The notes under the pieces are model-generated. The model was not told the origin of the DNA. It searched no databases and saw only the letters and a list, made by a program, of their open reading frames with translations. A DNA stretch of 64,000 nucleotides from assembly GCF_000143415.4 (NCBI RefSeq), contig NW_003314304.1, positions 1,565,548-1,629,547 of the forward strand, read 5' to 3'. This DNA comes from Selaginella moellendorffii. Taxonomy: Eukaryota > Plantae > Lycopodiophyta. Of this stretch, positions 2,180-59,709 are shown in pieces. The position numbers and the translations under genes were made by a program. Position 1 is the stretch's first letter. Each line of letters opens with the position of its first letter.

Positions 2180-5100
2180 CTAAATACCTTTGCAGACCCA
2201 TATTTGTTTTCCCTCCAAGATTATGGGATGAAGAGCAAAATGTTTTTCCATGATTGTCTCCTGTTTTTCTTGTTTCCCAAATTTAGTTGTCACTAGCTTA
2301 AATATCTCTTGCACATCTTCTGCTTTGGGATTTGTAGTTATCTTGCTTTTGAGAAGACATGAATCCAAAAAACTTATAAGCCTTCCCTTGATCTCATCCA
2401 CGATTGCATTCACTATCTCTCCAACACCAGCAAAATGTCCTCCAACTTTGGCCCCAATAAATAATAGGATCAATGTATTTTTAAGTACTGGAGCAAATTT
2501 CTTGAGCCAATTTGGTGGGAGATCCAATTCAACACCTATAGAACTCTTTACTTGATGACCTTTAGAAGTTCCTTCAGGCCATTCACACAAGTAATGAAGT
2601 CTACCATGTGTTCCCAGTATTTTACTGTAATTTTTCCACATATTATTCTCATCAAGAATATATGGATATTTTGGGTAATCTGTCTCCAATTTCAATAATA
2701 CTTGAAAACACGTTGTATGGATTGCATTCACTTTATCCATGATAGACTTGAGTCCATTTTTGAGCTCATTAACGCTTACTTCAATGTCATTAAGTTTTGT
2801 ATCTAACTTGTCAAAACGGTTCTCCATTTTATCAAACATCTTCTTAATATATTTGAGGATTGCATCAAGTTTTGGGTCTTCAATGTTTGGAAACTCAACA
2901 ACATCTAATGATGCTTTGGGAATTGTGACTTCTCCAACCTCCTCATAATCCTTCAAGAGTTCATGAAGTTCAACAAACTTATTCACCAGTTCATGTTTTT
3001 GCTCCTTAAGCATCAATAGCTTAGCCAAAGCATTCTCATCTGAGACCTTCAAATCATTATTCACATCCCAACTCTCTGCTTCATGTGAATAATTCCAAGT
3101 GTGAGAGTATTCTAGACCTCTTTCTCTTGCTTCATATTTGACTTGCTTTAGTGGACAAACAACTGAAGCCCATAATTCTAATTTGTCCACCTTATTTAGT
3201 ATCCTTCTCCATACATAACCACGTCTCATCACATTTTCTTCAATTTCCAAAGATGGGCAATCCTCCATACATACCCCAATAATGCAATTTCTAATTTTTT
3301 CCATCCATCCTTCAGCTTCCTTTTCTAAATCCGGCCTTGGTGTATTCTCTACCTCTTTTGGGTAGTAAATGATGACATCAACCCATTGCCTATCTTTCCA
3401 GTTGTCTGTGTCTCCCCCAACTCTCACAATTATCTCGATAAGGTTTTTTTTCAAAGCCACCCATCCATTCCCAAGCCTGAAACCTTTCTTGCTTAATTTG
3501 TGAAGTTTAACTTGGATCTTTGTGAAAATACTTGCAGGAAACAATTTCAGGTCCTTGTCTTTGCATTCAAACCTCCTGCCCCAGTAGTTGTGGTTTTTTT
3601 GAGTGTTAATTGACAATAAATATCCTGGAGGTGAATAGTCTTCTTGCAATAGTGTTGGCATTATCAACTCTTTGGGCAAGTTATGCCAATTCCCATCCCA
3701 TGTTTCATCCCAAGGCAATATCACTCCCATCTCATGGAGCACTCCAAGAATGTACTCCACTATTTTGTCTTGCTTCCCACATTGTTGCTTCAACTGATGT
3801 TTAACTTTGTGTGTTTCCATTTTACTTTTGAGTTTGCTTGTCTCAGTATGTATGAAGAGTTGCACCACATCCCTCATAAACCATTGGACATCTAAGATGA
3901 CAAATTGAGACACAATGTCGTCCTCTTCATGTCCCAAGCCAAAGTAAATTGCATCACCAGAATCATGTAGAAATTGCAAGACAAATTTGAGAACATTCTC
4001 GGAACTCCTGTGAGGCAAGAGGATTTCGCCAACTTTGTCTAGGGGTATGACCTTCTTGTGACTTGCACCTTGTACCAGTTTCCTCTTTGCTTCAAGACAT
4101 TCCTGTGGTATTTGTTGCTGGTTTGACAGCAGTTCGTCCAAGCAACTCCCCAACATGGTTTTTATCTCCCTTAAAGCTTTCACTTGAGTGGCCACCACCT
4201 CAAAACAAAGATCTGTCCCAAACTCAAGTACTTGCCCATAGCCTTTGTCGGAGATTATTGCAGAAACCACCTCCTTTGGGTCAAAGTCGGGTTCTGGAGT
4301 GAAAAAGTTCAAGGCAATCAAGACCCTGGGCTTCCTTTTGGGTGAGGCTGATTGATGTGAAGCGATGAACCTCAGCCAGTAAACCAAATTCTGCTTGAAA
4401 ACGTCACAATTGTCATCCTCCACCTTGCATACGATCAAGAAGAGATCCTTCTCACTTCCTCTGAGAAAGTACTGGTGGAAAGCATGGAACTCTTCCTGTC
4501 CAGCCAGGTCGCAAATGAGCAGCTTTTGTTTGGTGGTCGCAAAGACAAGTGGTTGCAGCTCAATGCCTGCTGTTGAAGCATGCCTTTGGAGACATGATGG
4601 AAACCAAGACACTCTGCGGCAGAGGTTTTTTTTTATTGTGGTCTTTCCAACCCTGCTAGCACCACACAAGAAGAGCTTTGCTGTTGACGGGTTGTCAAAG
4701 TCTTTGAATGCACTCTGCTGGAAGATTGCATTCCGCTCTAAAAGACCAGAACACCTCTGCTTGAAAGCTTCAGAAGCTTCGGAATCATCACCTAGCTCAA
4801 GCACTTCCACGAGGCTTTGGTAGTTTTCCTCCAGGGCAGCCAGAATTTGTCTTTTCTGTGCATCACTATCAAGAAAACGAGCCCTGAATCTGCGCACCTT
4901 GCATTTTGGATCCCCCAGCAACTGGCAAAGCTCTTCCAGGTTTTCAAATTTTCGCTCAGATATTTTCAAGTCTTCAATGCTGCTTCCCAAAAGGCACCTC
5001 CATGGCAGCTCCGACTCACATGACAAAGCTTTCAGAGACTTGCAGCTGGTGATAGCTTTCCAAAAGAGCTCCCCATTCGTGATTTTGCACTCCGATATAC

Positions 5101-6534
5101 GCAAATGCTCCAGTTGGCTCTTCTCTATGCCCTCGGCAAACTCCAACGTTAACTCATCGTCTTGTCCCGTGCTACCGCATATTCCCAAATGGCGCAGCTT
5201 ACAATGTGGACTTGAGAGAGCTGACCACAGACTGCTGTCCCAGACCACTCCTCCTCCCTTTCTAAGGGTCAGAGGAAGCTGGCGGTGTCGCCTATGCGAA
5301 TAAAGATGAAGCTTGATCAGCTTGCAATTGCCCAACCATCCACCACCATCACCTGGATAAAGTGTAACGCTGAGTTCCTCCAAGCCACACTTAGCGCTGC
5401 TCAGGGCCTCACCCAGGCCGGTTGCATTGCTCAGGTCCATATATTGGCAACCTAAAACTGACAGGCTGGTGCCCTCCTGAAGAGCCTTGCATACCCATGG
5501 CAACACTCCAGGATCACTAATAAGTAGGTTTAGTCTAAGCGAGTCCAAGCTGTTCGTGAGTGCCTTGAAGCGTGATAGTCTTATCAGTGGAAGGTTTGCT
5601 CCCACAAATAGGTATAGTCTTTGCAGTGAACAGTTTGGACTCGTGAGTGCCTTGAAGAGTGCTTCACCTGCCCCCTCTGGAAACGATGCCCTCAGTTCTA
5701 CTAGCTTATTGCAAATGCCATTCTGAAATGCCTGTTCCCACCCTTCCTTGCCAATGTCCGTATCGATGATGGATAACTCTTCCACCTTGCACTCCTGACT
5801 TGCCAGATCCCTACTCAATTTCCCAAATCCTTCCACTGTCATCCTNNNNNNNNNNNNNNNNNNNNNNNNNNNNNNNNNNNNNNNNNNNNNNNNNNNNNNN
5901 NNNNNNNNNNNNNNNNNNNNNNNNNNNNNNNNNNNNNNNNNNNNNNNNNNNNNNNNNNNNNNNNNNNNNNNNNNNNNNNNNNNNNNNNNNNNNNNNNNNN
6001 NNNNNNNNNNNNNNNNNNNNNNNNNNNNNNNNNNNNNNNNNNNNNNNNNNTCTGTCATCGTCAGTAGCTTTGCAAACCTCTGCATCTCAATCTGCCAAAT
6101 ATCCTGTCCCTGCTGAGGAGGAGCAATGCCCTCTGCCACCCTTTGCATTCGATCACTGGGAATGCCCAACCTACAAGCGACCCTGGCAGCGAAGTGGATG
6201 AATCTGATGTCGAGCTGTGGTACCAAAGCGGCCTTGAGAATGTCAATGTGAGCAGCAGACGAACTGCCATCACCAGCGCCCTGTCTAAACTGGGTGGATG
6301 TGAAATGCACCAGTTGAGCACACCAAGCAGATCCTCCTCTGTGCCTCCAAACCTGTCGACGGTAGCACTCACCTCATCAACAAACTCACCTTTGGATGAG
6401 CGAAGCGCCTCCAGCTTCCCACAATAAAACCGAATCGCATTGAAGTGCCGCTTGTTGTCCCGCTTCGCTGCGAGAGTCTCCTTGATCTCCTTGACAGAAT
6501 GACAGGCGATCCACTCTCGTCGCTCCTCCTCCAT
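2180..6534 (-). pseudogene. TRN1-like: ROCO/TRN1-like copy 1, frameshifted near the N-terminus
   Basis: MEEERR start at 6534 is in a different frame from ORF 2180-6310, which begins at GTG. A 19-bp deletion (gagcatctcccacatccag, between ccag microhomologies) lies at 6276/6277. The rest is open. N-run at 5846-6050. Confidence 0.85.
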
Positions 6535-9591: not shown

Positions 9592-9593
<2 letters not shown>

Positions 9594-9642: not shown

Positions 9643-10190
9643 AAGAACTTTGCCAAGCCCAAAGTCGTTGATGTTAAGCTAGGCCGTGCTTGAAGCGCGT
9701 GATGATGATCATGAAAGTTCCTGTCGAGATGCTCGGTGGATTCTCCGTGTCTCCAGCTAGAGACTTATCGATCAATCCACAGTGTGCGGCAGCCGTCGTT
9801 TCGCTCGATCGCTCCCTCGTTTGCAAAAGCTCGGACTTGACGATCCTTCTCTTTCTGCCATGGATTCCTCCATGAAGAGACCACCGAGCCAAGTTGCGAG
9901 ATTGAGGTTAAGCTGTAGTGATCTTACGGACATCCTCTTTTTGGATTGCTTCCTTTTTTACTCCGCATATCGTATCGACACTGTTGTAGAAGAAACAAAC
10001 GAGTTTTGGAGGTAGCAACTTCCCTTCCATTTGATTGATACATGAAGAACAAGACATCGCTTGCAAGTGGAAGATCACACGGGAGATGTTTGGAGTCAAA
10101 CTGGAACTTTCGTGATTGTTACGAGCACCTCCCCTGAATCCAGCACCACACTATCTATCTGGTAATGTTTCAAAACGAGTAAACTAATCA
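9640..10190 (-). pseudogene. Possible highly degenerate BAHD acyltransferase C-terminal remnant (also ~32725-33270; partly deleted at ~51090-51260)
   Basis: Ordered weak motifs FTRFETL, GKLLPPKLVCFFYNSV, KKEAI and INDFGLGKVLYV (DFGWG-like), interrupted by stops and frameshifts. Motif resemblance only. Confidence 0.25.
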
Positions 10191-10449
10191 GTGTTTGGGA
10201 ATGAATGTTTGTGCTGCTTGGCCAGTTGCACTGCGGCAGCAGAGGAGGATGTTTTGCGGCAACTATACCCGACTAAATCGAAGTACTTTAATTGCAATTT
10301 GTAAGATCACAAGTACTAGTCCTGAAGAAAAACAGCGAGATGTGCTTATAATCAAGGCATTCTTGCAACGCAAGTGGAAATTCACTGTGTTTACCTGGGC
10401 TTTCCGAGGATGCTTCATCTGAATCGCATAGTGTCACCCTGCCATGAAA

Positions 10450-15537: not shown

Positions 15538-18500
15538 CTAAATACCTTTGCAAACCCATATTTGTTTTCCCTCCAAGATTATGGGATGAAGAGCAAAATA
15601 TTTTTCCATGATTGTCTCCTGTTTTTCTTTTTTCCCAAATTTAGTTGTCACTAGCTTAAATATCTCTTGCACATCTTCTGCTTTGGGATTTGTAGTTAGC
15701 TTGCTTTTGAGAAGACATGAATCCAAAAAGCTTATAAGCCTTCCCTTGGTTTCATCCACGATTGCATTCACTATCGGTCCAACACCAGCAAAATGTCCTC
15801 CAACTTTGGCCCCAATAAATAATAAGATCAATGTATGTTTAAGTACTAGAGCAAATTTCTTGAGCCAGTTTGGTGGGAGATCCAATTCAACACCTATAGA
15901 ACTCTTCACTTGATGACCTTTAGAAGTTCCTTCAGGCCATTCACACAAGTAGTGAAGTCTACCATGTGTTCCCAGTATTTTACTGTAATTTTTCCACATA
16001 TTATTCTCATCAAGAATATATGGATATTTTGGGCAATCTGTCTCCAATTTCAATAATACTCGAAAACACGTTGTATGGATTGCATTCACTTTATCTATGA
16101 TAGACTTGAGTCCATTCTTGAGCTCGTTAACGCTTACTTCAATGTCATTAAGTTTTGTATCCAACTTGTCAAAACGGTTCTCCATTTTATCAAACATCTT
16201 CTTAATATATCTAAAAATTGCATCGAGTTTTGGGTCTTCAATGTTTGGAAACTCAACAACATTTGATGATGCTTTGGGAANNNNNNNNNNNNNNNNNNNN
16301 NNNNNNNNNNNNNNNNNNNNNNNNNNNNNNNNNNNNNNNNNNNNNNNNNNNNNNNNNNNNNNNNNNNNNNNNNNNNNNNNNNNNNNNNNNNNNNNNNNNN
16401 NNNNNNNNNNNNNNNNNNNNNNNNNNNNNNNNNNNNNNNNNNNNNNNNNNNNNNNNNNNNNNNNNNNNNNNNNNNNNNNNNNNNNNNNNNNNNNNNNNNN
16501 NNNNNNNNNNNNNNNNNNNNNNNNNTCCCATGATTCTAATTTGTCCACCTTATTTAGTATCCTTCTCCATACATAACCACGTCTCATCACATTTTCTTCA
16601 ATTTCCAAAGATGGGCAATCCTCCATACATACCCCAATAATGCAATTTCTAATTTTTTCCATCCATCCTTCAGCTTCCTTTTCCAAATCCGGCCTTAGTG
16701 TATTCTCTACCTCTTTTGGGTAGTAAATGATGACATCAACCCATTGCCTATCTTTCCAATTGTCTGTGTCTCCCCCAACTCTCACAATTATCTCGATAAG
16801 GTTTTTTTTCAAAGCCACCCATCCATTCCCAAGCCTGAAACCTTTCTTGCTTAATTTGTGAAGCTTAACTTGGATCTTTGTGAAAATACTTGCAGGAAAC
16901 AATTTCAGGTCCTTGTCTTTGCATTCAAACCTCCTGCCCCAGTAGTTGTGGTTTTTTTGAGTGTTAATTGACAATAAATATCCTGGAGGTGAATAGTCTT
17001 CTTGCAATAGTGTTGGCATTATCAACTCTTTGGGCAAGTTATGCCAATTCCCATCCCATGTATCATCCCAAGGCAATATCACTCCCATCTCATGGAGCAC
17101 TCCAAGAATGTACTCCTCTATTTTGTCTTGGTTCCCACATTGTTGCTTCAACTGATGTTTAACTCTATGTGTTTCCATTTTACTTTTGAGTTTGCTTGTC
17201 TCAGTATGTATGAAGAGTTGCACCACATCCCTCATAAACCATTGGACATCTAAGATGACAAATTGAGACACAATGTCGTCCTCTTCATGTCCCAAGCCAA
17301 AGTAAATTGCATCACCAGAATCATGTAGAAATTGCAAGACAAATTTGAGAACATTCTCGGAACTCCTGTGAGGCAAGAGGATTTCGCCAACTTTGTCTAG
17401 GGGTATGACCTTCTTGTGACTTGCACCTTGTACCAGTTTCCTCTTTGCTTCAAGACATTCCCGTGGTATTTGTTGCTGGGATGACAGCAGTTCGTCCAAG
17501 CAACTCCCCAACATGGTTTTTATCTCCCTTAAAGCTTTCACTTGAGTGGCCACCACCTCAAAACAAATATCTGTCCCAAACTCAAGTACTTGCCCATAGC
17601 CTTTGTCTTTGTCGGAGATTATTGCAGAAACCACCTCCTTTGGGTCAAAGTCGGGTTCTAGAGTGAAAAAGTTCAAGGCAATCAAGACCCTGGGCTTCCT
17701 TTTGGGTGAGGCTGATTGATGTGAAGCGATGAACCTCAGCCAGTAAACCAAATTCTGCTTGAAAACGTCACAATTGTCATCCTCCACCTTGCATACGATC
17801 AAGAAGAGATCCTTCTCACTTCCTCTGAGAAAGTACTGGTGGAAAGCATGGACTCTTCCTGTCCAGCCAGGTCGCAAATGAGCAGCTTTTGTTTGGTGGT
17901 CGCATAGACAAGTGGTTGCAGCTCAATGCCTGCTGTTGAAGCACAATGCGGCAGAGGTTTTTTTTTATTGTGGTCTTTCCAACCCTGCTAGCACCACACA
18001 AGAAGAGCTTTCCTGTTGACGGGTTGTCAAAGTCTTTGAATGCACTCTGCTGGAAGATTGCATTCCGCTCTAAAAGACCAGAACACCTCTGCTTGAATGC
18101 TTCAGAAGCTTCGGAATCATTGCCTAGATATAGCTCTTCCACGAGGCTTTGGTAGTTTTCCTCCAGGGCAGCCAGAATTTGTCTCTTCTGTGCATCACTT
18201 GTAAGAGAAGGAGCCCTGAATCTGCGCACCTTGCATTTTGGATCNNNNNNNNNNNNNNNNNNNNNNNNNNNNNNNNNNNNNNNNNNNNNNNNNNNNNNNN
18301 NNNNNNNNNNNNNNNNNNNNNNNNNNNNNNNNNNNNNNNNNNNNNNNNNNNNNNNNNNNNNNNNNNNNNNNNNNNNNNNNNNNNNNNNNNNNNNNNNNNN
18401 NNNNNNNNNNNNNNNNNNNNNNNNNNNNNNNNNNNNNNNNNNNNNNNNNNNNNNNNNNNNNNNNNNNNNNNNNNNNNNNNNNNNNNNNNNNNNNNNNNNN

Positions 18501-19825
18501 NNNNNNNNNNNNNNNNNNNNNNNNNNNNNNNNNNNNNNNNNNNNNNNNNNNNNNNNNNNNNNNNNNNNNNNNNNNNNNNNNNNNNNNNNNNNNNNNNNNN
18601 NNNNNNNNNGCTTGAGCTTGATCAGCTTGCAATTGGGATTTTGTAGCGCTTTGCCCAACCATCCACCACAATCACCTGGATAAAGTGTAACCCTGAGTTC
18701 CTCCAAGCCACACTTAGCGCTGCTCAGGGCCTCACCCAGGCCCGTTGCATTGCTCAGGTCCTCACTCCGTCTCATTCCTTGGCAATTTAAAACTGACAGG
18801 CTGGTGCCCTCCTGAAGAGCCTTGCATACCCATGGCAACACTCCAGGATCACTTCCCGAATATAGGTATAGTCTTTGCAGCGAACAGTTTGAACAAGTGA
18901 GTGCCTTGAAGAGTGCTTCACCTGCCTCCTCTCGAAACGTTGCCACCAGTTTTACTAGCTTATTGCAAATGCCATTCTGAAATGCCTGTTCCCACCCTTC
19001 CTTGCCAATGTGGTTATCTTCGATGACTAACTCTTCCACCTTGCACTCCTGACTTGCCAGATCCCTACTCAATTTCCCAAATCCTTCCACTGTCATCCTG
19101 TTCCCCAGCAATTGGAGACGTTTCAAGTTGTTTCCTGGTTTCCTAAGGAGTTGGCTAAGGAGAGTCTCTGGGTTCCCAACCTTGTCCAACCAGAGCTCTG
19201 TCAAGCAGTCGAGCTGAGCAAAGGCCAACTCAAGCTCCTGAGGTGGTGTGAGGATGTCTTTGCCTCGCCAATCGAAACGTAGCCCTTTCAAGACCTTGAA
19301 TTCCTCTGTCATGAGAAGCTTTGCAAACCTCTGCACCTCAATCTGCCAAATATCCTGTCCCTGCTGAGGAGGAGCAATGCCCTCTGCCACCCTTTGCATT
19401 CGATCACTGGGAATGCCCAACCTACAAGCAACCCTGGCAGCGAACTGGATGAATCTGATGTCGAGCTGTGGTACCAAAGCGGCCTTGAGAATGTCAATGT
19501 GAGCAGCAGCAGCAGCAGCAGACGAACTGCCATCACCAGGAGCATCTCCCACATCCAGAGCCCCGTCTAAACTGGGTGGATTTGAAATGCACCAGTTGAG
19601 CACACCAATCAGATCCTCCTCTGTGCCTCCAAACCCCTCAACGGTAGCACTCACCTCATCAACAAACTCACCTTTGGATGCGTCAAGCGCCTCCAGCCTC
19701 CAGATCTTCCCACAATGAAACACAATCGCATTGAAGTGCCGCTTGTTGTCCCGCTTCGCTGCGAGAGCCTCCTTGATCTCCTTGACAGACAAACAGGGGA
19801 TCCACACTCGTCGCTCCTCCTCCAT
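15538..19825 (-). pseudogene. TRN1-like: ROCO/TRN1-like copy 2, two frameshifts in the Roc domain; could express LRR + P-loop only (669 aa)
   Basis: Net 31-bp loss at ~17944 (gca-caa-tgcgg versus gcatgcc...gacactctgcgg) and a 1-bp deletion at ~17851 (catggactc versus catggaactc) relative to copies 1, 4 and 5. Contains two N-runs. Confidence 0.85.
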
Positions 19826-22173: not shown

Positions 22174-23454
22174 TTATTGCTTACAATAGTTAAAGCACAA
22201 TACAGTGTTTAGTTTTATGGGATGACATATATATATAATTGAGGAGAGTAAACAAATTTCAAGATGAAGCTTGATTAGCTTGCAATTGGGATTTTGTAGC
22301 GCTTTGCCCAACCATCCACCACCATCACCTGGATAAAGTCTAACGCGGAGTTCCTCCAAGCCACACTTAGCGCTGCTCAGGGCCTCACCCAGGCCCGTTG
22401 CATTGCTCAGGTCCTCACTTCGGCAATCTAAAACTGACAGGCTGGTGCCCTCCTGAAGAGCCTTGCATACCCATGGCAACACTGCAGGATCCCGATATAG
22501 GCCTAGTCTTTGCAGCGAACAGCTTGGACTCGTGAGTGCCTTGAAGAGTGCTTCACCTGCCCCCTCTGGAAACGATGCCCTCAGTTTTACTAGCTTATTG
22601 CAAATGCCATTCTGAAATGCCTGTTCCCACCCTTCCTTGGCAATGCCCTCATCCAGGATGGCTAACTCTTCCACCTTGCACTCCTGACTTGCCAGATCCC
22701 TACTCAATTTCCCAAATCCTTCCACTGTCATCCTGTTCCCCACCAACCTGTTCGCCAGCAATTCGAGACGTTTCAAGTTGTTTCCTGCTTTCCTAAGGAG
22801 TTGGCTAAGGAGAGTCTCTGGGTTCCCAACATTGCGCAACCAGAGCTCTGTCAAGCAGTCGAGCTGAGCAAAGGCCATCTCAAGCTCCTGAGGTGGTGTG
22901 AGGATGTCTTTGCCTTCCCAATAGAAAGCTAGCCCTTTCAAGACCTTGAATTCCTCTATCATCAGAAGCTTTGCAAACCTCTGCACCTCAATCTGCCAAA
23001 TATCCTGTCCCTGCTGAGGAGGAGCAATGCCCTCTGCCACCCTTTGCATCCGATCACTGGGAATGCCCAACCTACAAGCGACCCTGGCAGCGAAGTGGAT
23101 GAATCTGATGTCGAGCTGTGGTACCAAAGCGGCCTTGAGAATGTCAATGTGAGCAGCAGCAGCAGCAGACGAACTGCCATCACCAGGAGCATCTCCCACA
23201 TCCAGAGCCCTGTCTAACCTGGGCGGGTTTGAAATGCACCAGTTGAGCACACCAATCAGATCCTCCTCTGTGCCTCCAAAACTCTCGACGGCAGCACTCA
23301 CCTGATCAACAAACTCACCTTCGTATGAGGGCTCCAGCCCACAATAAAACTCAATCGCATTGAAGTGCCGCTTGTTGTCCCGCTTCGCTGCGAGAGCCTC
23401 CTTGATCTCCTTGACAGACCAACAGCGGATCCACACTCGTCGCTCCTCCTCCAT
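22174..23454 (-). pseudogene. TRN1-like: ROCO copy 3, 3'-truncated: N-terminal LRR half fused to spacer-derived tail (426 aa ORF)
   Basis: Homology to the other copies stops after NCKLIKLHL at ~22261, where it joins AT-rich spacer sequence (gagagtaaacaaatttc). Confidence 0.85.
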
Positions 23455-28061: not shown

Positions 28062-28225
28062 GGTCCGCGAAAGTTCTAGCTGAAAATTAAATGAATAGAT
28101 TACAGTTATTCCCAGAGGTATGGTGAGTGCTTTCCTTTTACAATCTCTGCGTCGCATCATCAATGGTGATAGAAGGTTAATTAATAACGACGATCCGAAT
28201 GCATGAAATGGATATCCTGCTCTTA

Positions 28226-39532: not shown

Positions 39533-42500
39533 CTAAATACCTTTGCAGACCCATATTTGTTTTCCCTCCAAAATTATAGGATGAAGAGCAAAATATTTTT
39601 CCATGATTGTCTCCTGTTTTTCTTCTTTCCCAAATTTAGTTGTCACTAGCTTAAATATCTTTTGCACATCTTCTGCTTTGGGATTTGTAGGTAGCTTGCT
39701 TTTAAGAAGACATGAATCCAAAAAACTTATGAGGCTTCCCTTGATCTCATCCACTATTGCATTCACTATCTCTCCAACACCAGCAAAATGTCTTCCAACT
39801 TTGGCCCCAATAAATAATAGGATCAATGTATATTTAAGTACTGGAGCAAATTTTTTGAGCCAATTTGGTGGGAGATCCAATTCAACACCTATAGAACTCT
39901 TCACTTGATGACCTTTAGAAGTTCCTTCAGGCCATTCACACAAGTAGTGAAGTCTACCATGTGTTCCCAGTATTTTACTGTAATTTTTCCACATATTATT
40001 CTCATCAAGAATATATGGATATTTTGGGTAATCTGTCTCTAATTTCAATAATACTTGAAAACACGTTATATGGATTGCATTCACTTTATCCATGATAAAC
40101 TTGAGTCCATTCTTGAGCTTGTTAACGCTTACTTCAATATCATTAAGTTTTGTATCTAACTTGTCAAAACGGTTCTCCATTTTATCAAACATCTTCTTAA
40201 TATATCTGAGGATTGCATCAAGTTTTGGGTCTTCAATGTTTGGAAACTCAACAATATCTGATGATGCTTTGGGAATTGTGACTTCTCCAACCTCCTTATA
40301 GTCCTTCAAGAGTTCATGAAGTTCAACAAACTTATTCACCAGTTCATGTTTTTGCTCCTTAGGCATCAATAGCTTAGCCAAAGCATTCTCATCTGAGACC
40401 TTTAAATCATTATTCACATCCCAGCTCTCTGCTTCATGTGAATAATTCCAAGTGTGAGAGTATTCTAGACCTCTTTCTCTTGCTTCATATTTGACTTGCT
40501 TTAGTGGACAAACAACTGAAGCCCATAATTCTAATTTGTCCACCTTATTTAGTATCCTTCTCCATACATAACCACGTCTCATCACATTTTCTTCAATTTC
40601 CAAAGATGGGCAATCCTCCATACATACCCCAATAATGCAATTTCTAATTTTTTCCATCCATCCTTCAGCTTCCTTTTCTAAATCCAGCCTTGGTGTATTC
40701 TCTACCTCTTTTGGGTAGTAAATGATGACATCAACCCATTGCCTATCTTTCCAATTGTCTGTGTCTCCCCCAACTCTCACAATTATCTCGATAAGGTTTT
40801 TTTTCAAAGCCACCCATCCATTCCCAAGCCTGAAACCTTTCTTGCTTAATTTGTAAAGTTTAACTTGGATCTTTGTGAAAATACTTGCAGGAAACAATTT
40901 CAGCTCCTTGTCTTTGCATTCAAACCTCCTGCCCCAGTAGTTGTGGTTTTTTTGAGTGTTAATTGACAATAAATATCCTGAAGGTGAATAGTCTTCTTGC
41001 AATAGTGTTGGCATTATCAACTCTTTGGGCAAGTTATGCCAATTCCCATCCCATGTTTCATCCCAAGGCAATATCACTCCCATCTCATGGAGCACTCCAA
41101 GAATGTACTCCACTATTTTGTCTTGCTTCCCACATTGTTGCTTCAACTGATGTTTAACTCTATGTGTTTCCATTTTACTTTTGAGTTTGCTTGTCTCAGT
41201 ATGTATGAAGAGTTGCACCACATCCCTCATAAACCATTGGACATCTAAGATGACAAATTGAGACACAATGTCGTCCTCTTCATGTCCCAAGCCAAAGTAA
41301 ATTGCATCACCAGAATCATGTAGAAATTGCAAGACGAACTTGAGAACATTCTTGGAACTCCTGTGAGGCAAGAGAATTTTGCCAACTTTTTCTAGGGGTA
41401 TGACCTTCTTGTGACTTGGATCTTGTACCAATTTCCTCTTTGCTTTGAGACATTCCCGTGGTATTTGTTGCTGGGCTGACAGCAGTTCCTCCAAGCAACT
41501 CCCCAACATGGTTTTTATCCCCCTTAAATCTTTCACTTGAGTGGCCACCACCTCAAAACAAAAGTCATTCCCAAACTCAAGTACTTGCCAATAGCCTTTG
41601 TCGGAGATTATTGCAGAAACCACCTCCTTTGGGTCAAAGTCGGGTTCTGGAGTGAAAAAGTTCAAGGCAATCAAGACCCTGGGCTTCCTTTTGGGTGAGG
41701 CTGATTGATGTGAAGCGATGAACCTCAGCCAGTAAACCAAATTCTGCTTGAAAACGTCACAATTGTCATCCTCCACCTTGCATACGATCAAGAAGAGATC
41801 CTTCTCACTTCCTCTGAGAAAGTACTGGTGGAAAGCATGGAACTCTTCCTGTCCAGCCAGGTCGCAAATGAGCAGCTTTTGTTTGGTGGTCGCATAGACA
41901 AGTGGTTGCAGCTCAATGCCTGCTGTTGAAGCATGCCTTTGGAGACATGATGGAAACCAAGACACTCTGCGGCAGAGGTTTTTTTTTATTGTGGTCTTTC
42001 CAACCCTGCTAGCACCACACAAGAAGAGCTTTGCTGTTGACGGGTTGTCAAAGTCTTTGAATGCACTCTGCTGGAAGATTGCATTCCGCTCTAAAAGACC
42101 AGAACACCTCTACTTGAAAGCTTCAGAAGCTTCGGAATCATTGCCTATATCAAGCTCTTCCACGAGGCTTTGGTAGTTTTCCTCCAAGGCAGCCAGAATT
42201 TGTCTTTTCTGTGCATCGCTATCAAGAAAAGGAGCCCTGAATCTGCGCACCTTGCATTTTGGATCCCCCAGCAACTGGCAAAGATCTTCCAGCTTTTCAA
42301 TTTCTCCCTGACGTATTTCCAAGTCTTCAATGCTGCTTCCCAAAAGGCACCTCCATGGCAGTTCCGAGTGACATGACAAAGCTTTCAGATGCTTGCAGCT
42401 GGTGATAGCTTTCCAAAAGAGCTCCCCATTCGTGATTTTGCAATTGAATATAACCAAATGCTCCAGTTGGCTCTTCTCTATGCCCTCGGCAAACTCCAAC

Positions 42501-43813
42501 GTTAACTCATCTTCTCCTCCCCATATTTCCAAATGGCGCAGCTTACAATGTGGACTTGAGAGGGCTGACCACAGACTGCTGTCACAGACCACTCCTCCTC
42601 CCTCGTTGCGAAAAGAAAGTTTAAGCTTGATCAGCTTGCAATTGGGATTTTGTAGCGCTTTGCCCAACCATCCACCACCATCACCTGGATAAAGTGTAAC
42701 GCTGAGTTCCTCCAAGCCACACTTAGCGCTGCTCAGGGCCTCACCCAGGCCCGTTGCATTGCTCAGGTCCTCACTCTGTCCTTGGCAATTTAAAACTGAC
42801 AGGCTGGTGCCCTCCTGAAGAGCCTTGCATACCCATGGCAACACTCCAGCATCACTATCCCATAGGGATAGTCTTTGCAGCGAACAGCTTGGACTCGTGA
42901 GTGCCTTGAAGAGTGCTTCACCTGCCTCCTCTGGAAACGGTGCCACCAGTTCTACTAGCTTATTGAAAATGCCATTCTGAAATGCCTGTTCCCACCCTTC
43001 CTTGCCAATGACGTTATCCAGGATGACTAACTCTTCCACCTTGCACTCCTGACTTGCCAGATCCCTACTCAATTTCCCAAATCCTTCCACTGTCATCCTG
43101 TTCCTAGTCAAGACGAGACGTTTCAAGTTGTTTCCTGGTTTCCTAAGGAGTTGGCTAAGGAGAGTCTCTGGGTTCCCAACCTTGTCCAACCTGAGCTCTG
43201 TCAAGCAGTCGAGCTGAGCAAAGGCCAACTCAAGCTCCTGAGGTGGTGTGAGGATGTCTTTGCCTCCTTGCCAACCTAGCCCTTTCCAGACTTTGAATTC
43301 CTCCGTCATCAGTAGCTTCGCAAACCTCTGTACCTCAATCTGGCCAATATCCTGTCCCTGCTGAGGAGGAGCAATGCCCTCTGCCACCCTTTGCATTCGA
43401 TCACTGGGAATGCCCAACCTACAAGCGACCCTGGCAGCGAAGTGGATGAATCTGATGTCGAGCTGTGGTACCAAAGCGGCCTTGAGAATGTCAATGTGAG
43501 CAGCAGCAGCAGCAGACGAACTGCCATCACCAGGAGCATCTCCCACATCCAGAGCCCTGTCTAAACAGGGCGGATTTGAAATGCACCAGTTGAGCACACC
43601 AATCAGATCCTCCTCTGTGCCTCCAAACCTCTCGACGGTAGCACTCACCTCATCAACAAACTCACCTTTGGATGAGTGAAGCCTCTCCAAGATCTCCCCA
43701 CAAAAAAACTGAATCGCATCGAAGTGCCGCTTGTTGTCCCGCTCCGCTGCGAGAGCCTCCTTGATCTCCTTGACAGAGTCACAGCCGATCCACACTCGTC
43801 GCTCCTCCTCCAT
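39533..43813 (-). pseudogene. TRN1-like: ROCO copy 4 with one nonsense codon at the LRR/Roc boundary; 567-aa LRR-only ORF 42110-43813
   Basis: CAG>TAG at 42110-42112 (SEAFK*RCSG versus SEAFKQRCSG). The frame is otherwise open to 39533. Confidence 0.87.
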
Positions 43814-52300: not shown

Positions 52301-55300
52301 AGGGTATACTCCCTTAGCCAAAGATGCAATTGTTGATTCTATGTTATAGGTAAAAATTTGATAATTAGAATTGTTGCACGTTTCAATATTAATTTTGGGA
52401 CCAACTTCTAAAGTTTTACCAAGATTATTTTAAATTAATAAGTTCAAAACTTTTTCTTGACAATCATGAGAAGTCAAAATATCACCAAGGTTAACTTTAA
52501 CCATATAATATCCAATCTCATTACAACCAAAATGTGGCTTAGATTATTCAATGGCAATTCAAGAGCTGGTCCTCTTTAACAAGTTCCATATATAAATAAT
52601 ATAGTGATTTACCCTTTCTTTTTTTGTAAGTTATTGTTTAAAAAGAGTTTATTTTAAATTCACTTAAATCTTTCTCTTGAGAAACTACTTAGCTTGGCAT
52701 AAAATCTTAGCAACCCAATACTAAATACTAGTCCAAAAATTTGAGAAAAACATATAAACCAGTATAGTAATGATAATTTGAAGCTTTTTCTTGCCAATTT
52801 ACAAGGTATAATAAATGATTGAGATGTTGGTTCTCTAAACAAAGATGAGATAAAGATTGGGAGTGATCTTAGGCAAACATCTCTAAGCCAAACTTCTTCA
52901 TTTGGCTCATAAACTTGGTTGAGTTTGCAAAGGTTTCGATAAAGTTTATTTTTGAATTTTTGCATGTCATAAATGCTTATCAAGGCAATGTAAATAGGAG
53001 TATACTATAATTATGGCTTGTCATTTTTGTTATGGTGGTGGTGATTGCAACTATCACCATGCTTTCAACATCTTTATAAATGATTAATTTTTTTTTACTT
53101 TAGGATCATCTAAAGGAGTCTCACTTATAATTTCTATAGGCCCTGATATTAATTTGGGTGTTTCCTAACTTTAAGATGTGTTTTTGTAACCACATCAACT
53201 TTGTACTTGGTCTAAATGCTCTATGTGTCTAGTTCCACTTTTGGATACCCAAATGACTAGATAACTTTTTATGAAGTCCAAATTTAAAAACTTATATTGG
53301 TATTAGAAAAGTGTAAGGTGTGACTCTATTAGTTGATTAAAAAAATCACACCACATGTTAAGATTGATATTTAATAGGTTTAGTTTACTCTAATTTCAAC
53401 TCGAGGGGTAAGGTGTTAAAAGAGTAAGGCTCTTAGAAGAGCCCTACTCTTGCAAAAAAACATGATGGATTATAAACAACCAAAGATAATAACTTAAAAA
53501 ATTATTAATATTATTTTAAATATAGAAATGTACTCTTTGTTCCAATTAGTTGTAAGTATTAGGTTATTTGAGATTAAGCATCTTTAAATAGTATTGGGTT
53601 AGATGACCTTCTAGAAAGCCCAAATTCAGGAGATTATAGTGCCATAAATAATATAAGTTAATGTTTGTAAAGAAACTAGCAAGAAAGAAAACAATTTAAA
53701 ATTAAACAACCTTTTAAAAATGAAATATTTACTAGAATGTTCAAAATAAGTATTTAGAAAGCATTTTTATTAGAGCTACTCTCAAGTAATACTTGATGTG
53801 TTGCAAATGATTTCATAGTAAAAAATATCTTTATACTTCATTTTTAAAATAATAATTAGTGGTGTTTAATACATATTTTGTATTTTCTAAACAATATCTA
53901 GAGACACTCAAAAACCTTTTGCTGTTAAATTATTGTCATTCAAGCACTTGTTTACAATAGTTAAAACACAATACAATGTTTGGTTTTATGGGATGGTAAA
54001 TATATGTAATTGAGGAGAGTAAACAGATTTCTATATAGACTTTAGTAAGTAAATGGAATTGTGAACAATGACAATTTTCATAAGTCTTTAAACTGTAGTT
54101 TGTAACATATTTTAGCTAAATATTAATTTAAAAAATAAGTTGAAGTTGGTAAAGATAATATAAAGTTATCTCCTACAGTATGTGATGATAAATAACAATT
54201 AAGCATTTGTATTTAGTTTTGAAATGCATTACCTCAAAAGGTTTATTAATAATAATTAACTTTATTCCTAGAATTGTTTTACCAAAGATGCCAAAATGAA
54301 AAAATGCCACTAACATGAGATCATCTGAGTAGCTTTTCTTTAAAGCATTCAATACTAAAACATCAGAATAAATATAAAAATTATTTTATAGCAATATGCA
54401 AAGATACCTCATCGACTTATATCAAGAAATGTAGCATAATCATAGTAAAAATGCCCTACATAGTCTTTGTTAAATAAAACTAAAATCATAGTTATATTTG
54501 AATGTAAAATAGCTTTGTAAATCTATACTGTTTTATAATCCAAGGTTATAGGATGGATATTAAAATATTTGGCCATGATTGTCTTTTGATCAATTTCTTT
54601 CACAATTTTAGTCTTCTTATCAAAATATGATTAATATGACATCATTTGACTAGCTTTTCCTTCACTTGAATTATTAAACATTCAACACTGAAATAAACTT
54701 GGAACATTAGAATAAACATGAAATAATATTTTAAAGCAATAATGCAAATTTACCTCATTGACTTCTATTACAAAATATAGCCCAATCATTCCAAAGACAT
54801 ATAGCAATAACTTTATAAAGCATATTTATTTACTTTCATCTTGCCAAATCATCTCGTAAAAATATAGATTGATGATCTGATTTAGAATGGTTTTTGTTAG
54901 ATAAAACCAAAAACTTAAATGTTAAATACCTTTGTAGACCCATATTTTTCTTTCATCCAGGATTATGGGATGAAAAACAAAACATATGATTAATGATTTA
55001 CTTTAAATACCCTACATAGCTTCTGTTAGATAAAACTAAAAGTATGGATACATTTCAATATAAAATACCTTTGTAAATATATATTGTTTTATCATCTAAA
55101 TTATAAGATAAAAAATAAATTATTTGGTAGTTTTTCCTTCATTTAAAGCATTAAAAATTCAACACTGAAATGAACTTGAAACATTAGAATAAACAGGAAA
55201 GAATAATTTGGAGTTATAATGCAAACTTACCTCCTTAACTTCTGCTATAAAAAATACCCCAATCATACCAAAGACATATAGTAATAACTATATAAAGCAT

Positions 55301-55398
55301 GTTTATTTACCTTTGTTTTACTAAACCACCTCATAAAAATTTAGATTGATGATCTGCTTTAAAATGGTGTTTGTTAGAAAAAACTAAAAACTTAAATA

Positions 55399-58300
55399 TT
55401 AAATACCTTTGCAGACCCATATTTTTCTTCCCTCTAAGATTGTGGGATGAAGAGCAAAATGTTTTTCCATGATTGTCTCCTGTTTTTCTTCTTTCCCAAT
55501 TGTAGTTGTCACTAGCTTAAATATCTCTTGCACATCTTCTGCTTTGGGATTTGTAGTTAACTTATTTTTGAGAAGACATGAATCCAAAAAGCTTATGAGG
55601 CTTCCCTTGATCTCATCCACCATTGCATTCATTATTTCTCCAACACCAGCAAAATGTCCTCCAACTTTAGCCCCAATAAATAATAGGATCAATGTATGTT
55701 TAAATATTGGAGCAAATTTCTTGAGCCAGTTTGGTGGGAGATCCAATTCAACACCTACAGAACTCTTCACTTGATGACCTTTAAAAGTTCCTTGAGGCCA
55801 TTCACACAAGTAGTGAAGTTTAACATGTGTTCCCAATATTTTGCTGTAATTTTTCCACCTATTATTCTCATCAAGAATATATGGATATTTTGGGCAATCT
55901 GTCTCCAATTTCAATAATACTTGAAAACACGTTGTATGGATTGCATTCACTTTATCCATGATAGACTTGAGTCCATTCTTGAGCTCGTTAAGGCTTACTT
56001 CAATGTTATCAAGTTTTGTATCCAACTTGTCAAACCGATTCTCCATTTTATCAAACTTCTTATCAAAATATCTAAAAATTGCATCGAGTTTTGGGTCTTC
56101 AATGTTTGGAAACTCAACAACATTTAATGATGCTTTGGGAATTGTGACTTCTCCAACCTCCTCATAGTCCTTTAAGAGTTCATGAAGCTCAACAAACTTA
56201 TTCACCACTTCATATTTTTGCTCATTAGGCATCAATAACTTGGCCAAAGCATTCTCATCTGAGACCTTCAAATCGTTAATCACATCCCAACTCTCTGCTT
56301 CATGTGAATCATTCCAAGTGTGAGAGTAGTCTAGACCGCTTTCTCTTGCTTCACATTTGACTTTCTTTAGTGGATAAATAACTGCATCCCATGATTTTGG
56401 TTTGCCCACATTATTTAGTATCCTTCTCCACACATAACCACGTCTCATCACATTTTCTTCAATTTCCAAAAATGGGCAATCCTCTATACATACCCCAATA
56501 ATGCAATTTCTAATTTTTTCCATCCATCCTTCAGCTTCTTTTTCCAAATCCGGCCTTGGTGCATTCTCTACCTTTTTTGGGTAGTAGATGATGACATCAA
56601 CCCATTGCCTATCTTTCCAATTGTCTGTGTCTCCCCCAACTCTAACAATTGTCTTGATAAGGTTTTCTTTCAAAGCCACCCATCCATTCCCAGGCCTAAA
56701 ACCTTTCTTGCTTAATTTGTGAAGTTTAACTTGGATCTTTGTGAAAATACTTGCAGGAAACAATTTCAAGTCCTTGTCTTTGCATTCAAACCTCCTGCCC
56801 CAGTAGTTGTGGTTTTTTTGAGTGTCAATTGGCACTGAGGGTGACAATAAATATTCTGGAGGTGAATATTCTTCTTGCAATAATGTTGGCATTATCGGCT
56901 CTTTGGGCAAGTTATGCCAATTCCCATCCCATTTATCATCCCAAGGCAATATCACTCCCATCTCATGGAGCACTCCAAGAATGTACTCCACTATTTTGTC
57001 TTGGTTCCCACATTGTTGCTTCAACTGATGTTTAACTCTGTGTGTTTCCATTTGACTTTTGAATTTGCTTGTCTCAGTATGTATGAAGAGTTGCACCACA
57101 TCCCTCATAAACCATTGGACATCTAAGATGACAAATTGAGACACAATGTCGTCCTCTTCATGTCCCAAGCCAAAGTAAATTGCATCACCAGAATCATGTA
57201 GAAATTGCAAGACGAATTTGAGAACATTCTTGGAACTCCTGTGAGGCAAGAGAATTTTGCCAACTTTTTCTAGGGGTATGACCTTCTTGTGACTTGGATC
57301 TTGTACCAATTTCCTCTTTGCTTTGAGACATTCCCGTGGTATTTGTTGCTGGGCTGACAGCAGTTCCTCCAAGCAACTCCCCAACATGGTTTTTATCCCC
57401 CTTAAATCTTTCACTTGAGTGGCCACCACCTCAAAACAAAAGTCATTCCCAAACTCAAGTACTTGCCAATAGCCTTTGTCGGAGATTATTGCAGAAACCA
57501 CCTCCTTTGGGTCAAAGTCGGGTTCTGGAGTGAAAAAGTTCAAGGCAATCAAGACCCTGGGCTTCCTTTTGGGTGAGGCTGATTGATGTGAAGCGATGAA
57601 CCTCAGCCAGTAAACCAAATTCTGCTTGAAAACGTCACAATTGTCATCCTCCACCTTGCATACGATCAAGAAGAGATCCTTCTCACTTCCTCTGAGAAAG
57701 TACTGGTGGAAAGCATGGAACTCTTCCTGTCCAGCCAGGTCGCAAATGAGCAGCTTTTGTTTGGTGGTCGCATAGACAAGTGGTTGCAGCTCAATGCCTG
57801 CTGTTGAAGCATGCCTTTGGAGACATGATGGAAACCAAGACACTCTGCGGCAGAGGTTGTTTTTTATTGTGGTCTTTCCAACCCTGCTATCACCACACAA
57901 GAAGAGTTTTGCTGTTGATGGGTTGTCAAAGTCCTTGAATGCACTCTTCTGGAAGATTGCATTCCGCTCTAAAAGACCAGAACACCTCTGCTTGAAAGCT
58001 TCAGAAGCTTCGGAATCACTGCCTATATCAAGCTCTTCCACGAGGCTTTGGTAGTTTTCCTCCAGGGCAGCCAGAATTTGTCTTTTCTGTGCATCACTAT
58101 CAAGAAAACGAGCCCTGAATCTGCGCACCTTGCATTTTGGATCCCCCAGCAACTGGCAAAGCTCTTCCAGCTTTTCAATTTCTTCCTGACGTATTTCCAA
58201 GTCTTCAATGCTGCTTCCCAAAAGGCACCTCCATGGCAGCTCCGACTCACATGACAAAGCTTTCAGAGACTTGCAGCTGGTGATAGCTTTCCAAAAGGGC

Positions 58301-59709
58301 TCCCCATTCGTGATTTTGCAGCTCCATATACCCAAATGCTCCAGTTGGCTCTTCTCTATGCCCTCGGCAAACTCCAACGGTAACTCTGTCCTGCTACCCC
58401 ATATTTTCAAATGGCGCAGCTTACAATGTGGACTTGAGAGAGCTGACCACAGACTGCTGTCACAGACCATTCCTCCTCCCTCGTTGAACCAATCAAGGTC
58501 AAGGTTGAGCTTGATCAGCTTGCAATTGGGATTTTGTAGCGCTCTGCCCAACCATCCACCACCATCACCTGGATAAAGTCTAACGCAGAGTTCCTCCAAG
58601 CCACACTTAGCGCTGCACAGGGCCTCACCCAGGCCCGTTGCATTGCTCAGGTCCTCACTCTGTCTCATTTCTCGGCAATCTAAAACTGACAGGCTGGTGC
58701 CCTCCTGAAGAGCCTTGCATACCCATGGCAACACTCCAGCATCAGTACCCCAAAATAGGTATAGTCTTTGCAGCGAACAGTTTGGACTCGTGAGTGCCTT
58801 GAAGAGTGCTTCACCTGCCTCCTCTGGAAACGAATATGCCTCCAGTGCCACTAGCTTATTGAAAATGCCATTCTGAAATGCCTGTTCCCACCCTTCCTTG
58901 TCAATGTCCTTATCTTCGATGACTAACTCTTCCACCTTGCACTCCTGACTTGCCAGATCCCTACTCAATTTCCCAAATCCTTCCACTGTCATCCTGTTCC
59001 CCCGCAATTCGAGACGTTTCAAGTTGTTTCCTGCTTTCCTAAGGAGTTGGCTAAGGAGAGTCTCTGGGTTCCCAACCTTGTCCAACCAGAGCTCTGTCAA
59101 GCAGTCGAGCTGAGCAAAGGCCAACTCAAGCTCCTGAGGTGGTGTGAGGATGTCTTTGCCTCCCCAACGGAAATCTAGGCCTTTCAAGACTTTGAATTCC
59201 TCTGTCATCATCAGTAGCTTTGCAAACCTCTGCACCTCAATCTGGCCAATGTCCTGTCCCTGCTGAGGAGGAGCAATGCCCTCTGCCACCCTTTGCATCC
59301 GATCACTGGGAATGCCCAACCTACAAGCGACCCTGGCAGCGAAGTTGATGAATCTGATGTCGAGCTGTGGTACCAAAGCGGCCTTGAGAATGTCAATGTG
59401 AGCAGCAGCAGCAGACGAACTGCCATCACCAGGAGCATCTCCCACATCCAGAGCCACGTCTAAACTGGGTGGATTTGAAATGCACCAGTTGAGCACACAA
59501 ATCAGATCCTCCTCTGTGCCTCCAAACCTCTCGACGGCAGCATTCACCTTATCAACAAACTCACCTTTGGATGGGACAAGCTCCCACATGTGCCCACAAG
59601 GAAACGCAATCGCATTGAAGTGCCGCTTGTTGTCCCGCTTCGCTGCGAGAGCCTCCTTGATCTCCTTGACAGAGAAACAGTAGATCCACTCTCGTCGCTC
59701 CTCCTCCAT
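55399..59709 (-). CDS. TRN1-like: Intact, intronless LRR-Roc-COR (ROCO) protein, TORNADO1-like, 1436 aa (copy 5)
   Basis: Uninterrupted ORF. RI-like LRRs (CLTELWL, NLKRLEL, KVEELVI, SLQRLYL, GLEELCV, KLRHLKI, QLEHLGI). Roc P-loop GDSRVGKTT, switch I TAGIEL, switch II ICDLAGQEEFHAFH. COR-like region LQFLHDSGDAIYF..VILDVQWF. Coiled coil, then a TRN1-type tail (HYLCEW..FAP..IGAKVGGHFAG..IWVCK). Confidence 0.9.
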   Translation of the reverse strand: MEEERREWIYCFSVKEIKEALAAKRDNKRHFNAIAFPCGHMWELVPSKGEFVDKVNAAVERFGGTEEDLICVLNWCISNPPSLDVALDVGDAPGDGSSSAAAAHIDILKAALVPQLDIRFINFAARVACRLGIPSDRMQRVAEGIAPPQQGQDIGQIEVQRFAKLLMMTEEFKVLKGLDFRWGGKDILTPPQELELAFAQLDCLTELWLDKVGNPETLLSQLLRKAGNNLKRLELRGNRMTVEGFGKLSRDLASQECKVEELVIEDKDIDKEGWEQAFQNGIFNKLVALEAYSFPEEAGEALFKALTSPNCSLQRLYLFWGTDAGVLPWVCKALQEGTSLSVLDCREMRQSEDLSNATGLGEALCSAKCGLEELCVRLYPGDGGGWLGRALQNPNCKLIKLNLDLDWFNEGGGMVCDSSLWSALSSPHCKLRHLKIWGSRTELPLEFAEGIEKSQLEHLGIWSCKITNGEPFWKAITSCKSLKALSCESELPWRCLLGSSIEDLEIRQEEIEKLEELCQLLGDPKCKVRRFRARFLDSDAQKRQILAALEENYQSLVEELDIGSDSEASEAFKQRCSGLLERNAIFQKSAFKDFDNPSTAKLFLCGDSRVGKTTIKNNLCRRVSWFPSCLQRHASTAGIELQPLVYATTKQKLLICDLAGQEEFHAFHQYFLRGSEKDLFLIVCKVEDDNCDVFKQNLVYWLRFIASHQSASPKRKPRVLIALNFFTPEPDFDPKEVVSAIISDKGYWQVLEFGNDFCFEVVATQVKDLRGIKTMLGSCLEELLSAQQQIPRECLKAKRKLVQDPSHKKVIPLEKVGKILLPHRSSKNVLKFVLQFLHDSGDAIYFGLGHEEDDIVSQFVILDVQWFMRDVVQLFIHTETSKFKSQMETHRVKHQLKQQCGNQDKIVEYILGVLHEMGVILPWDDKWDGNWHNLPKEPIMPTLLQEEYSPPEYLLSPSVPIDTQKNHNYWGRRFECKDKDLKLFPASIFTKIQVKLHKLSKKGFRPGNGWVALKENLIKTIVRVGGDTDNWKDRQWVDVIIYYPKKVENAPRPDLEKEAEGWMEKIRNCIIGVCIEDCPFLEIEENVMRRGYVWRRILNNVGKPKSWDAVIYPLKKVKCEARESGLDYSHTWNDSHEAESWDVINDLKVSDENALAKLLMPNEQKYEVVNKFVELHELLKDYEEVGEVTIPKASLNVVEFPNIEDPKLDAIFRYFDKKFDKMENRFDKLDTKLDNIEVSLNELKNGLKSIMDKVNAIHTTCFQVLLKLETDCPKYPYILDENNRWKNYSKILGTHVKLHYLCEWPQGTFKGHQVKSSVGVELDLPPNWLKKFAPIFKHTLILLFIGAKVGGHFAGVGEIMNAMVDEIKGSLISFLDSCLLKNKLTTNPKAEDVQEIFKLVTTTIGKEEKQETIMEKHFALHPTILEGRKIWVCKGI

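Follow-up and report, generated by a model that had tools for sequence, protein, structure and literature searches.

Tandem gene arrays that evolve by birth and death, with hyper-divergent alleles and exchange between paralogues, are best known from resistance-gene loci. Here we describe an array in the lycophyte Selaginella moellendorffii that combines these features with a different kind of protein, namely leucine-rich repeats (LRR) followed by a Roc-COR GTPase (ROCO proteins). Five copies of the gene, named A to E, are found in a window of 64,000 nucleotides, which is the whole stretch of DNA analysed (contig NW_003314304.1 of assembly GCF_000143415.4, positions 1,565,548 to 1,629,547; scaffold GL377608.1 in assembly GCA_000143415.2, the scaffold coordinate being the window coordinate + 1,565,547).

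LRR-ROCO proteins of the brown algae Ectocarpus and Saccharina (Zambounis 2012) have been proposed as immune receptors, with selection acting at the same kind of sites as those reported below (PMC11378527). The Selaginella array resembles them in its LRR-Roc-COR architecture, in the expansion of the family and in positive selection at concave-face LRR positions. However, each LRR of the brown algae is a separate exon and diversity is generated by exon shuffling and alternative splicing, whereas the LRR region of the array is intronless in all intact copies and diversity comes from point replacement and from segment exchange between tandem paralogues and alleles. The repeats also differ: those of the array are of the ribonuclease inhibitor (RI)/NLRP type, with 25-30 residues, whereas the brown-algal motif has 23-24 residues.

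In land plants, one or two ROCO genes with a poorly understood developmental function are described (PMC11378527), and TORNADO1 (TRN1/LOP1) is a developmental gene (PMC11378527, citing Cnops 2006). TRN1 and the array have the same order of LRR, Roc, COR and C-terminal region, and share invariant P, CE, H, G, L and W..C positions. According to its descriptions, TRN1 has one or two copies and a role in development; the array, in contrast, is multi-copy, polymorphic and under diversifying selection, and its G4 region reads N-F-F-T where the TRN1 clade has a T-H-x-D-like string.

With the clusters of plant nucleotide-binding LRR (NLR) genes the array shares the tandem arrangement, birth and death, exchange between paralogues, hypervariable xxLxLxx positions, allelic hyper-divergence and a nucleotide-binding switch beside the LRR. 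Unlike NLRs, the array proteins have no NB-ARC/NACHT domain and no coiled-coil (CC), TIR or RPW8 signalling domain; their switch is a Ras-like Roc-COR GTPase, located after the LRR instead of before it. The animal ROCOs MFHAS1 and LRRK2, which have links to immunity, also present an LRR and then Roc-COR, and the Roc and COR-B domains of the array match LRRK2 structures, but kinase, ankyrin and WD40 domains are absent from the array. The MFHAS1 and LRRK2 genes are single-copy, and no hypervariable LRR is known from them.

Only about two NLR genes are reported for S. moellendorffii (PMC3782705), which raises the question of how intracellular pathogen recognition works in this plant. We give slightly better than even credence to the view that this young tandem array of ROCOs, belonging to a lycophyte/fern lineage sister to TORNADO1, is a repertoire of recognition receptors, likely for pathogen ligands, which stands in for NLRs.

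Results

Diversifying selection on the predicted concave face of the LRR

The five copies, all on the minus strand, were located by tblastn with the intact protein E. They were compared together with five further copies from the GL377608.1 scaffold and from the other haplotype, four of which are intact (P1-P4) and one of which has one frame break (P6). An earlier note on this DNA had drawn attention to LRR scaffolds carrying different residues at the exposed x positions of the LxxLxLxx motif and in the loop that follows. The strings that it quoted are present as written: after KVEEL, SIIDTD in A, VIEDNH in B, AILDEG in C, VILDNV in D and VIEDKD in E; after SLQRL, YLFVG, YLYSG, GLYR, SLWDS and YLFWG; after NLKRL, QLLG, ELLA, VLTR and ELRG; after QLEHL, RISE, VIFN and GIWS. 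On a scaffold that is nearly invariant, single positions after the second L of LxxLxL carry up to eight residues among the ten copies.

The codon alignment of the ten copies was protein-guided, with N placed at each frame break. Site models were fitted with our own GY94 implementation on a fixed topology, using M0 branch lengths with one free scale. For residues 1-585, M0 gave an omega (dN/dS) of 1.61 and a kappa of 1.5. When compared with M1a, M2a assigned 12.9% of the codons to a class with omega ~12 (likelihood-ratio test, LRT, 477), and a class with omega >1 was also obtained when M8 was compared with M7 (LRT 481). In the rest of the gene, omega was 0.79, with 10% of the codons at omega 4.5 (LRT 56; kappa 4.6). 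Restricting the LRR analysis to the five intact genes gave an omega of 1.83, above 1 with an LRT of 16.2, and an M2a LRT of 262; across the M2a fits with all copies and with intact copies only, 12-13% of the codons had omega ~12-18. A posterior above 0.95 for omega >1 was reached by 50 codons in residues 1-585, against 7 in the remaining 851. These seven non-LRR codons are 755, 757, 786, 792, 891, 1249 and 1318.

Pairwise Nei-Gojobori estimates within the window gave an omega of 0.8-2.6 over residues 1-560 (dN 0.045-0.093), 0.2-1.4 in Roc (dN 0.005-0.026), ~0.5 in COR and 0.3-0.6 in the C-terminus. In addition, a tree-free test was carried out on 60 exposed positions fixed in advance from the LRR motif. 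Omega was 2.15 at these positions (bootstrap 95% confidence interval 1.31-3.99), 0.99 at the other LRR positions and 0.44 in the Roc-COR-C-terminal part. The dN value at the 60 exposed positions was 0.42, versus 0.04 in the rest of the LRR. The dS value is likewise higher at exposed codons (0.19 versus 0.04). With the synonymous divergence of the rest of the gene as the yardstick, the dN of the exposed positions stood 5.4-fold above. By these estimates, the Roc, COR and C-terminal parts are under purifying selection (omega 0.44-0.5).

When mapped on the AlphaFold model of protein E, 36 of the 40 selected LRR-domain sites were located in a strand or at most four residues after one, and none in a helix (Fisher p=1.6e-15). 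The selected sites alternate with the buried leucines, following the pattern LxxL#L##. Their clustering on one surface was judged from the secondary-structure position and from this alternating strand pattern, not from three-dimensional distances. Some selected sites adjoin indels, and sites 10, 12, 35 and 37 are found on two short predicted N-terminal strands of low model confidence. The hypervariability announced by the earlier note was thus recovered by the codon models and on the predicted structure, omega greatly exceeding 1 both at the x positions of the LxxLxLxx motif and in the loop behind them. The concave LRR face is under strong diversifying selection, and we regard this finding as secure, together with the segment exchange, allelic hyper-divergence and birth and death described below.

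Segment exchange, allelic divergence, and birth and death

From Roc to the end of the gene, the tree of the copies was resolved into (E,P1), (D,(A,B)) and (P3,(P2,P4)). The LRR tree was star-like, with long tips and weak support. The identity of the nearest copy shifts between repeats. Over residues 1-30, P1 and D are the same; from residue 761 on, the copy nearest to P1 is E; and in one repeat C is identical to P2. These alignments show the LRR region to be pieced together, mosaic-like, from exchanged segments.

Copies P2 and P4 lie on colinear haplotype scaffolds with the same neighbouring genes and are syntenic alleles. Their flanks differ by 0.4-1.8% and the LRR part of the gene by 4.5-9.7%, the divergence inside the gene being 5-20 times that of the flanks. 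A second divergence peak between the two alleles, of 5.6-7%, was observed in the COR-B/C-terminal part (positions 13001-14000 within the stretch 10001-14300 of loci L003/L004).

The copies of the window are in different states of preservation. The nonsense codon of copy D is at 42110-42112 (residue 568), where the other copies have Q, and the corresponding public model, P0005 (LOC9647373), skips the stop. At the position of copy C, the other haplotype (GL377737.1) has the full-length P0006, and ~4.6 kb are missing in the window; because this allelic scaffold holds the complete gene at the same place, C is a deletion allele. In copy B, 31 bp of the Roc domain (~17942-17954) and a further single base (~17850-17853) are deleted, and two assembly gaps lie inside the copy, at 16281-16525 and 18245-18609. 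The frame break is real, as the other haplotype shares it (L006 20024-20865). The counterpart of B in that haplotype (L006 18264-21341, GL377737.1) is more degraded, consisting of five pieces with large internal deletions.

In copy A, the frame changes at ~6274-6280, with 7-bp and 12-bp deletions relative to E, and an assembly gap at 5846-6050 falls within the LRR; the public model for this copy, P0007, covers 2189-5845. An 81-bp in-frame insertion at 5519-5599 corresponds to a diverged extra LRR repeat with a 17-nt match to the preceding repeat, so that repeat number varies within the family. The birth and death that the earlier note had suggested is real: some copies are pseudogenes, one allele is a deletion, and the two haplotypes differ in copy number.

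Domain architecture

The AlphaFold model of residues 1-600 of E had a mean pLDDT of 76, with values mostly >85 for residues 175-565, in which ~15 confident strand-helix repeats of the RI/NLRP type were predicted. Two further LRR repeats are possible at aa 8-37, where the confidence of the model is low. According to Foldseek, the nearest solved folds of the LRR model are NLRP9, NLRP3 and ribonuclease inhibitor. Residues 219-347 match the LRRs of NLRP5 and NLRP1. No Pfam match to NB-ARC or NACHT was obtained at E up to 0.1, and the likeness to NLRPs is confined to the LRR part.

The Roc domain was recognized by Pfam (PF08477, E=2.3e-11, 44.4 bits for a cut-off of 27), and its best solved relative is an archaeal Roco RocCOR chain. 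COR-A was detected with E=1.1e-7 and 32.2 bits, slightly below the cut-off of 35.3; PF16095 is listed in the database for all paralogues. The AlphaFold model of residues 930-1436 was confident for COR-B (965-1170) only, and this part matched the COR of LRRK2 and of Chlorobium Roco in Foldseek (probability 1.00, E ~1e-3). The P-loop at G606-T613 (G1, GxSRVGKT) and the switch II motif DLAGQ (G3) are both invariant among the copies. In the P-loop of Ipomoea TRN1, GKN is found instead of GKT.

The last 250 residues comprise a coiled coil, a small beta region, a terminal WVC motif and, at 1339-1357, a glycine-rich stretch that is the most hydrophobic part of protein E. The C-terminal motifs P..YPY, LHxLCE..H.V..Q.G and WVC are invariant, and the region is common to all plant ROCOs examined, including Ipomoea TORNADO1 and those of moss, liverwort and fern. 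For this tail, Foldseek with the 930-1436 model gave no usable fold match, a word-index search found no stand-alone homologues, and a language-model atlas search with the C-terminal 300 residues returned weak COR-like leads only (scores <=0.74). The order of LRR, Roc-COR and conserved C-terminal tail named in the earlier note agrees with Pfam, fold matches and alignment.

Relationship to TORNADO1

A word-index search returned only S. moellendorffii proteins, at 81-92% identity, followed by an Adiantum protein at 30%; the Selaginella relatives bear the public names 'ROCO family protein' or 'TORNADO 1'. An exhaustive profile-free search recovered distant ROCOs in Selaginella, Adiantum, liverworts, mosses and Chara, together with Ipomoea TRN1. 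In a quick, unrooted maximum-likelihood tree of 124 Roc-COR regions, the array was sister to Selaginella D8T252 within a lycophyte+fern clade (SH-aLRT 99), and angiosperm TRN1 was placed in a separate clade with Ceratodon, Marchantia 5g17320 and Chara. On the evidence of this tree, the array is a sister lineage of the TORNADO1 clade and is not nested in it. Because it falls outside the clade holding angiosperm TRN1, the array is TRN1-like in architecture but not a TRN1 orthologue, and its earlier description as 'TRN1-derived' is not borne out in that wording. Among the papers covered by full-text searches, none describing this ROCO expansion was found.

Transcription and splicing

About half of the sampled words of E were present in fifteen sequencing runs labelled probable RNA. 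Contigs from four runs of four studies were compared with E at a likeness of at least 98%. Coverage by these contigs extends over the Roc-COR-C-terminal part and is patchy over the LRR part. The 3' splice joint 55353/55407 was seen in contigs of three runs, and the splice sites of the 53-nt intron, which is the sole intron and lies at the 3' end, are conserved in all copies. Through splicing, the long open reading frame loses its last two codons and its stop, and the product ends ...WVCK/DHQSKFL; the true C-terminus is thus a few residues longer, as in the public models.

The differences between the contigs and E match other copies, several of them being private to P1, and the spliced contigs of two runs carry exactly the 3' variants of P1. 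Transcription and splicing are thus established for the family, at least one intact copy among its members included. The presumed RNA runs thereby supply the expressed, intact paralogue on which the earlier note had made its proposal depend.

Organization of the locus

Self-comparison of the window revealed a tandem segmental duplication with units of ~13-20 kb, which are 91-97% identical including the intergenic DNA. Positions 53813-29480 correspond to locus L005 (GL377608.1, around public protein P0005), with 100% identity across 24,334 bases, and on this match an origin of the window in a different species was rejected. At the four assembly gaps, no sign of a misjoin was found: both flanks of each gap are colinear with one paralogue, and the spanned length fits. 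In A, 207 nt are missing and 207 are spanned; in B, the values are 363 and 369 for the first gap and 249 and 249 for the second; in the intergenic gap, they are 227 and 227. The reading frame across the gaps depends on the estimated gap length.

The features of the window are collected in Table 1. Fragments of SPX (PHO1-like), EIN3-like DNA-binding and Kelch/DUF4110 genes travel with each tandem unit, in the window and in loci L001, L002 and L005, and an intact SPX-EXS gene is present at the array edge beside P2 and P4. From these fragments and the intact gene at the edge, the duplication unit seems to have captured pieces of neighbouring genes. The public gene models at the fragments look chimeric (EIN3 + S6PP + SPX). 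On the downstream side of each ROCO copy lies a very AT-rich segment of ~1.3 kb, which recurs along with the unit.

Table 1. Coordinates, in the window, of the ROCO copies, of the parts of copy E and of other features.
Feature	Position	Strand	State or basis
Copy E, sole intact ROCO gene in the window	55331..59709	-	Open reading frame 55399-59709, 1436 codons; spliced product 1441 aa
Copy E, exons	Exon 1, 59709-55407; 53-nt GT..AG intron, 55406-55354; short exon 2, to 55331	-	Open reading frame and RNA contigs
Copy E, N-terminal region and LRR, aa 1-565	58015..59709	-	AlphaFold2 model, Foldseek, selected sites
Copy E, Roc GTPase, aa 596-760	57430..57924	-	Pfam, alignment to archaeal Roco chain and Rab10
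Copy E, COR-A and COR-B, aa 791-1170	56200..57339	-	Pfam; Foldseek of model
Copy E, C-terminal region, aa 1190-1436	55402..56142	-	Alignment with plant ROCOs, hydropathy
Copy D, full length	39533..43813 (tblastn 39536-43813)	-	Indels all in frame, one nonsense codon
Copy C, N-terminal fragment, residues 1-405	22255..23454	-	tblastn
Copy B, pseudogene	15538..19825 (tblastn 15541-19825)	-	Frameshifts and two gaps
Copy A	2180..6534 (tblastn 2183-6534)	-	Frameshift and one gap
DUF4110/Kelch gene fragment	27670-28083	+	Pfam
SPX gene fragment	28824-29354	-	Pfam
EIN3 DNA-binding gene fragment	30304-30621	-	Pfam
Second SPX gene fragment	47133-47672	-	Pfam
AT-rich segments	1-1273, 13441-14726, 37437-38721, 53449-54452		22-28% G+C

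Discussion

If the array proteins are recognition receptors, the predicted ligand surface would be formed by the concave beta-sheet face and the post-strand loops of an LRR solenoid of the RI/NLRP type. Repeated amino-acid replacement would diversify this surface, as would the swapping of segments the size of a repeat among paralogues and alleles. The Roc-COR GTPase would be kept constant as a switch, and the family-specific C-terminal domain would act as the output. Unequal crossing-over would gain, lose and break copies, in a process of birth and death. The likeliest ligands would be fast-evolving pathogen molecules, the array proteins being in that case immune receptors that replace the nearly absent NLRs. 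Ligand binding at the variable surface, the GTP switch and the output are all steps that we infer. The immune-receptor step is a credible inference, which draws on the evolutionary signature, the near absence of NLRs and the brown-algal proposal.

Several observations weigh against the array proteins being immune receptors. First, four of the five copies in the window are broken, and none of the private alleles of E at 57859-57948 could be found in the RNA contigs of four runs. As contigs drop rare variants, the silence of E is not established by this result. Protein E also has six private substitutions around the P-loop, including D607 (A in all other copies) and N617 (K in the others), and this sole intact copy of the window may be silent or functionally altered. 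The five copies counted by the earlier note are all present, but as a count of the working repertoire in the window five is too many. Moreover, that the runs are RNA is only a guess, and from contigs no read can be attributed to one copy with certainty.

Second, the codon models were run with neither PAML nor HyPhy; the site models assume a single tree, which recombination contradicts, and changes of several bases at once can push omega upwards. Third, G4 reads NFFT instead of NKxD in all copies, and with the loss of NKxD, GTP-specific switching is not assured. N-x-F-like strings are present at G4 in the related lycophyte, fern and liverwort ROCOs, and a T-H-x-D-like string in the TRN1 clade. 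Finally, nothing recognisable as a death, TIR, kinase or pore domain turned up in the protein, and the tail, judged by its motifs, is shared with the developmental gene TRN1.

The same observations have to be weighed under other explanations of the array. One of them is that the proteins recognize partners in a conflict that does not involve pathogens. The partners bound by the variable surface would then be endogenous or selfish and evolve fast; examples are transposon or viral-like proteins, determinants of gametes or of self and non-self, and, as for ribonuclease inhibitor, secreted nucleases. Diversifying selection by itself names no ligand, an immune-type output domain was not found, and the fold is nearest to ribonuclease inhibitor and to NLRPs, several of which have reproductive rather than immune roles. 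On the other hand, the features of the array, that is birth and death, allelic hyper-divergence and exchange, are those for which resistance-gene loci are best known. Furthermore, S. moellendorffii lacks a normal NLR repertoire (PMC3782705), and we consider recognition outside pathogen defence to be unlikely.

A second explanation would see in the array subfunctionalised, TRN1-like developmental proteins, in which the LRR face is tuned to diverging endogenous partners, for instance of the tetraspanin type. It fits with an architecture that is common to the array and TRN1 as a whole, C-terminal motifs included, and with the developmental role of TRN1 (PMC11378527, citing Cnops 2006). However, the array is located outside the TRN1 clade, and an omega of ~12-18 at 12-13% of the codons, pseudogenes and haplotype copy-number differences are unlike what is expected with conserved developmental partners. 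A role of this kind is improbable.

That the copies are simply decaying duplicates, with omega >1 due to relaxed constraint, gene conversion, multi-nucleotide mutation or indel misalignment, would be in line with the four defective copies out of five, the recombinant LRR region, the raised dS at exposed codons (0.19 versus 0.04) and the selected sites next to indels, but it is highly improbable, as the signal is kept with the five intact genes only, is periodic at strand and post-strand positions with none in helices, contrasts with a dN of 0.04 in neighbouring codons of the same repeats and with purifying selection in the rest of the gene (omega 0.44), and as relaxation would lead to an omega near 1, not 12.

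Returning to the array as a receptor repertoire, it is conceivable, though rather unlikely, that lycophytes and perhaps ferns have built an immune repertoire around a Roc-COR GTPase instead of a STAND ATPase, with the C-terminal domain as a hitherto unrecognised executioner or membrane-acting output. The latter suggestion, equally tentative, draws on the invariant Cys/Glu/His positions and on the glycine-rich hydrophobic helix of that domain. If this were true, the TORNADO1 of flowering plants would be a domesticated relative of an ancient class of immune receptors.

Short and nearly free of introns, the genes lend themselves to cloning for assays of cell death, GTP binding and ligand fishing. 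In this land-plant ROCO lineage the evolutionary signature of resistance genes is complete, and the array is thereby a concrete candidate, open to testing, for an intracellular receptor system outside the NLRs. Beside the brown algae, it would represent a second, independent case in which LRR-ROCOs have diversified their predicted binding face, by a different genetic mechanism.

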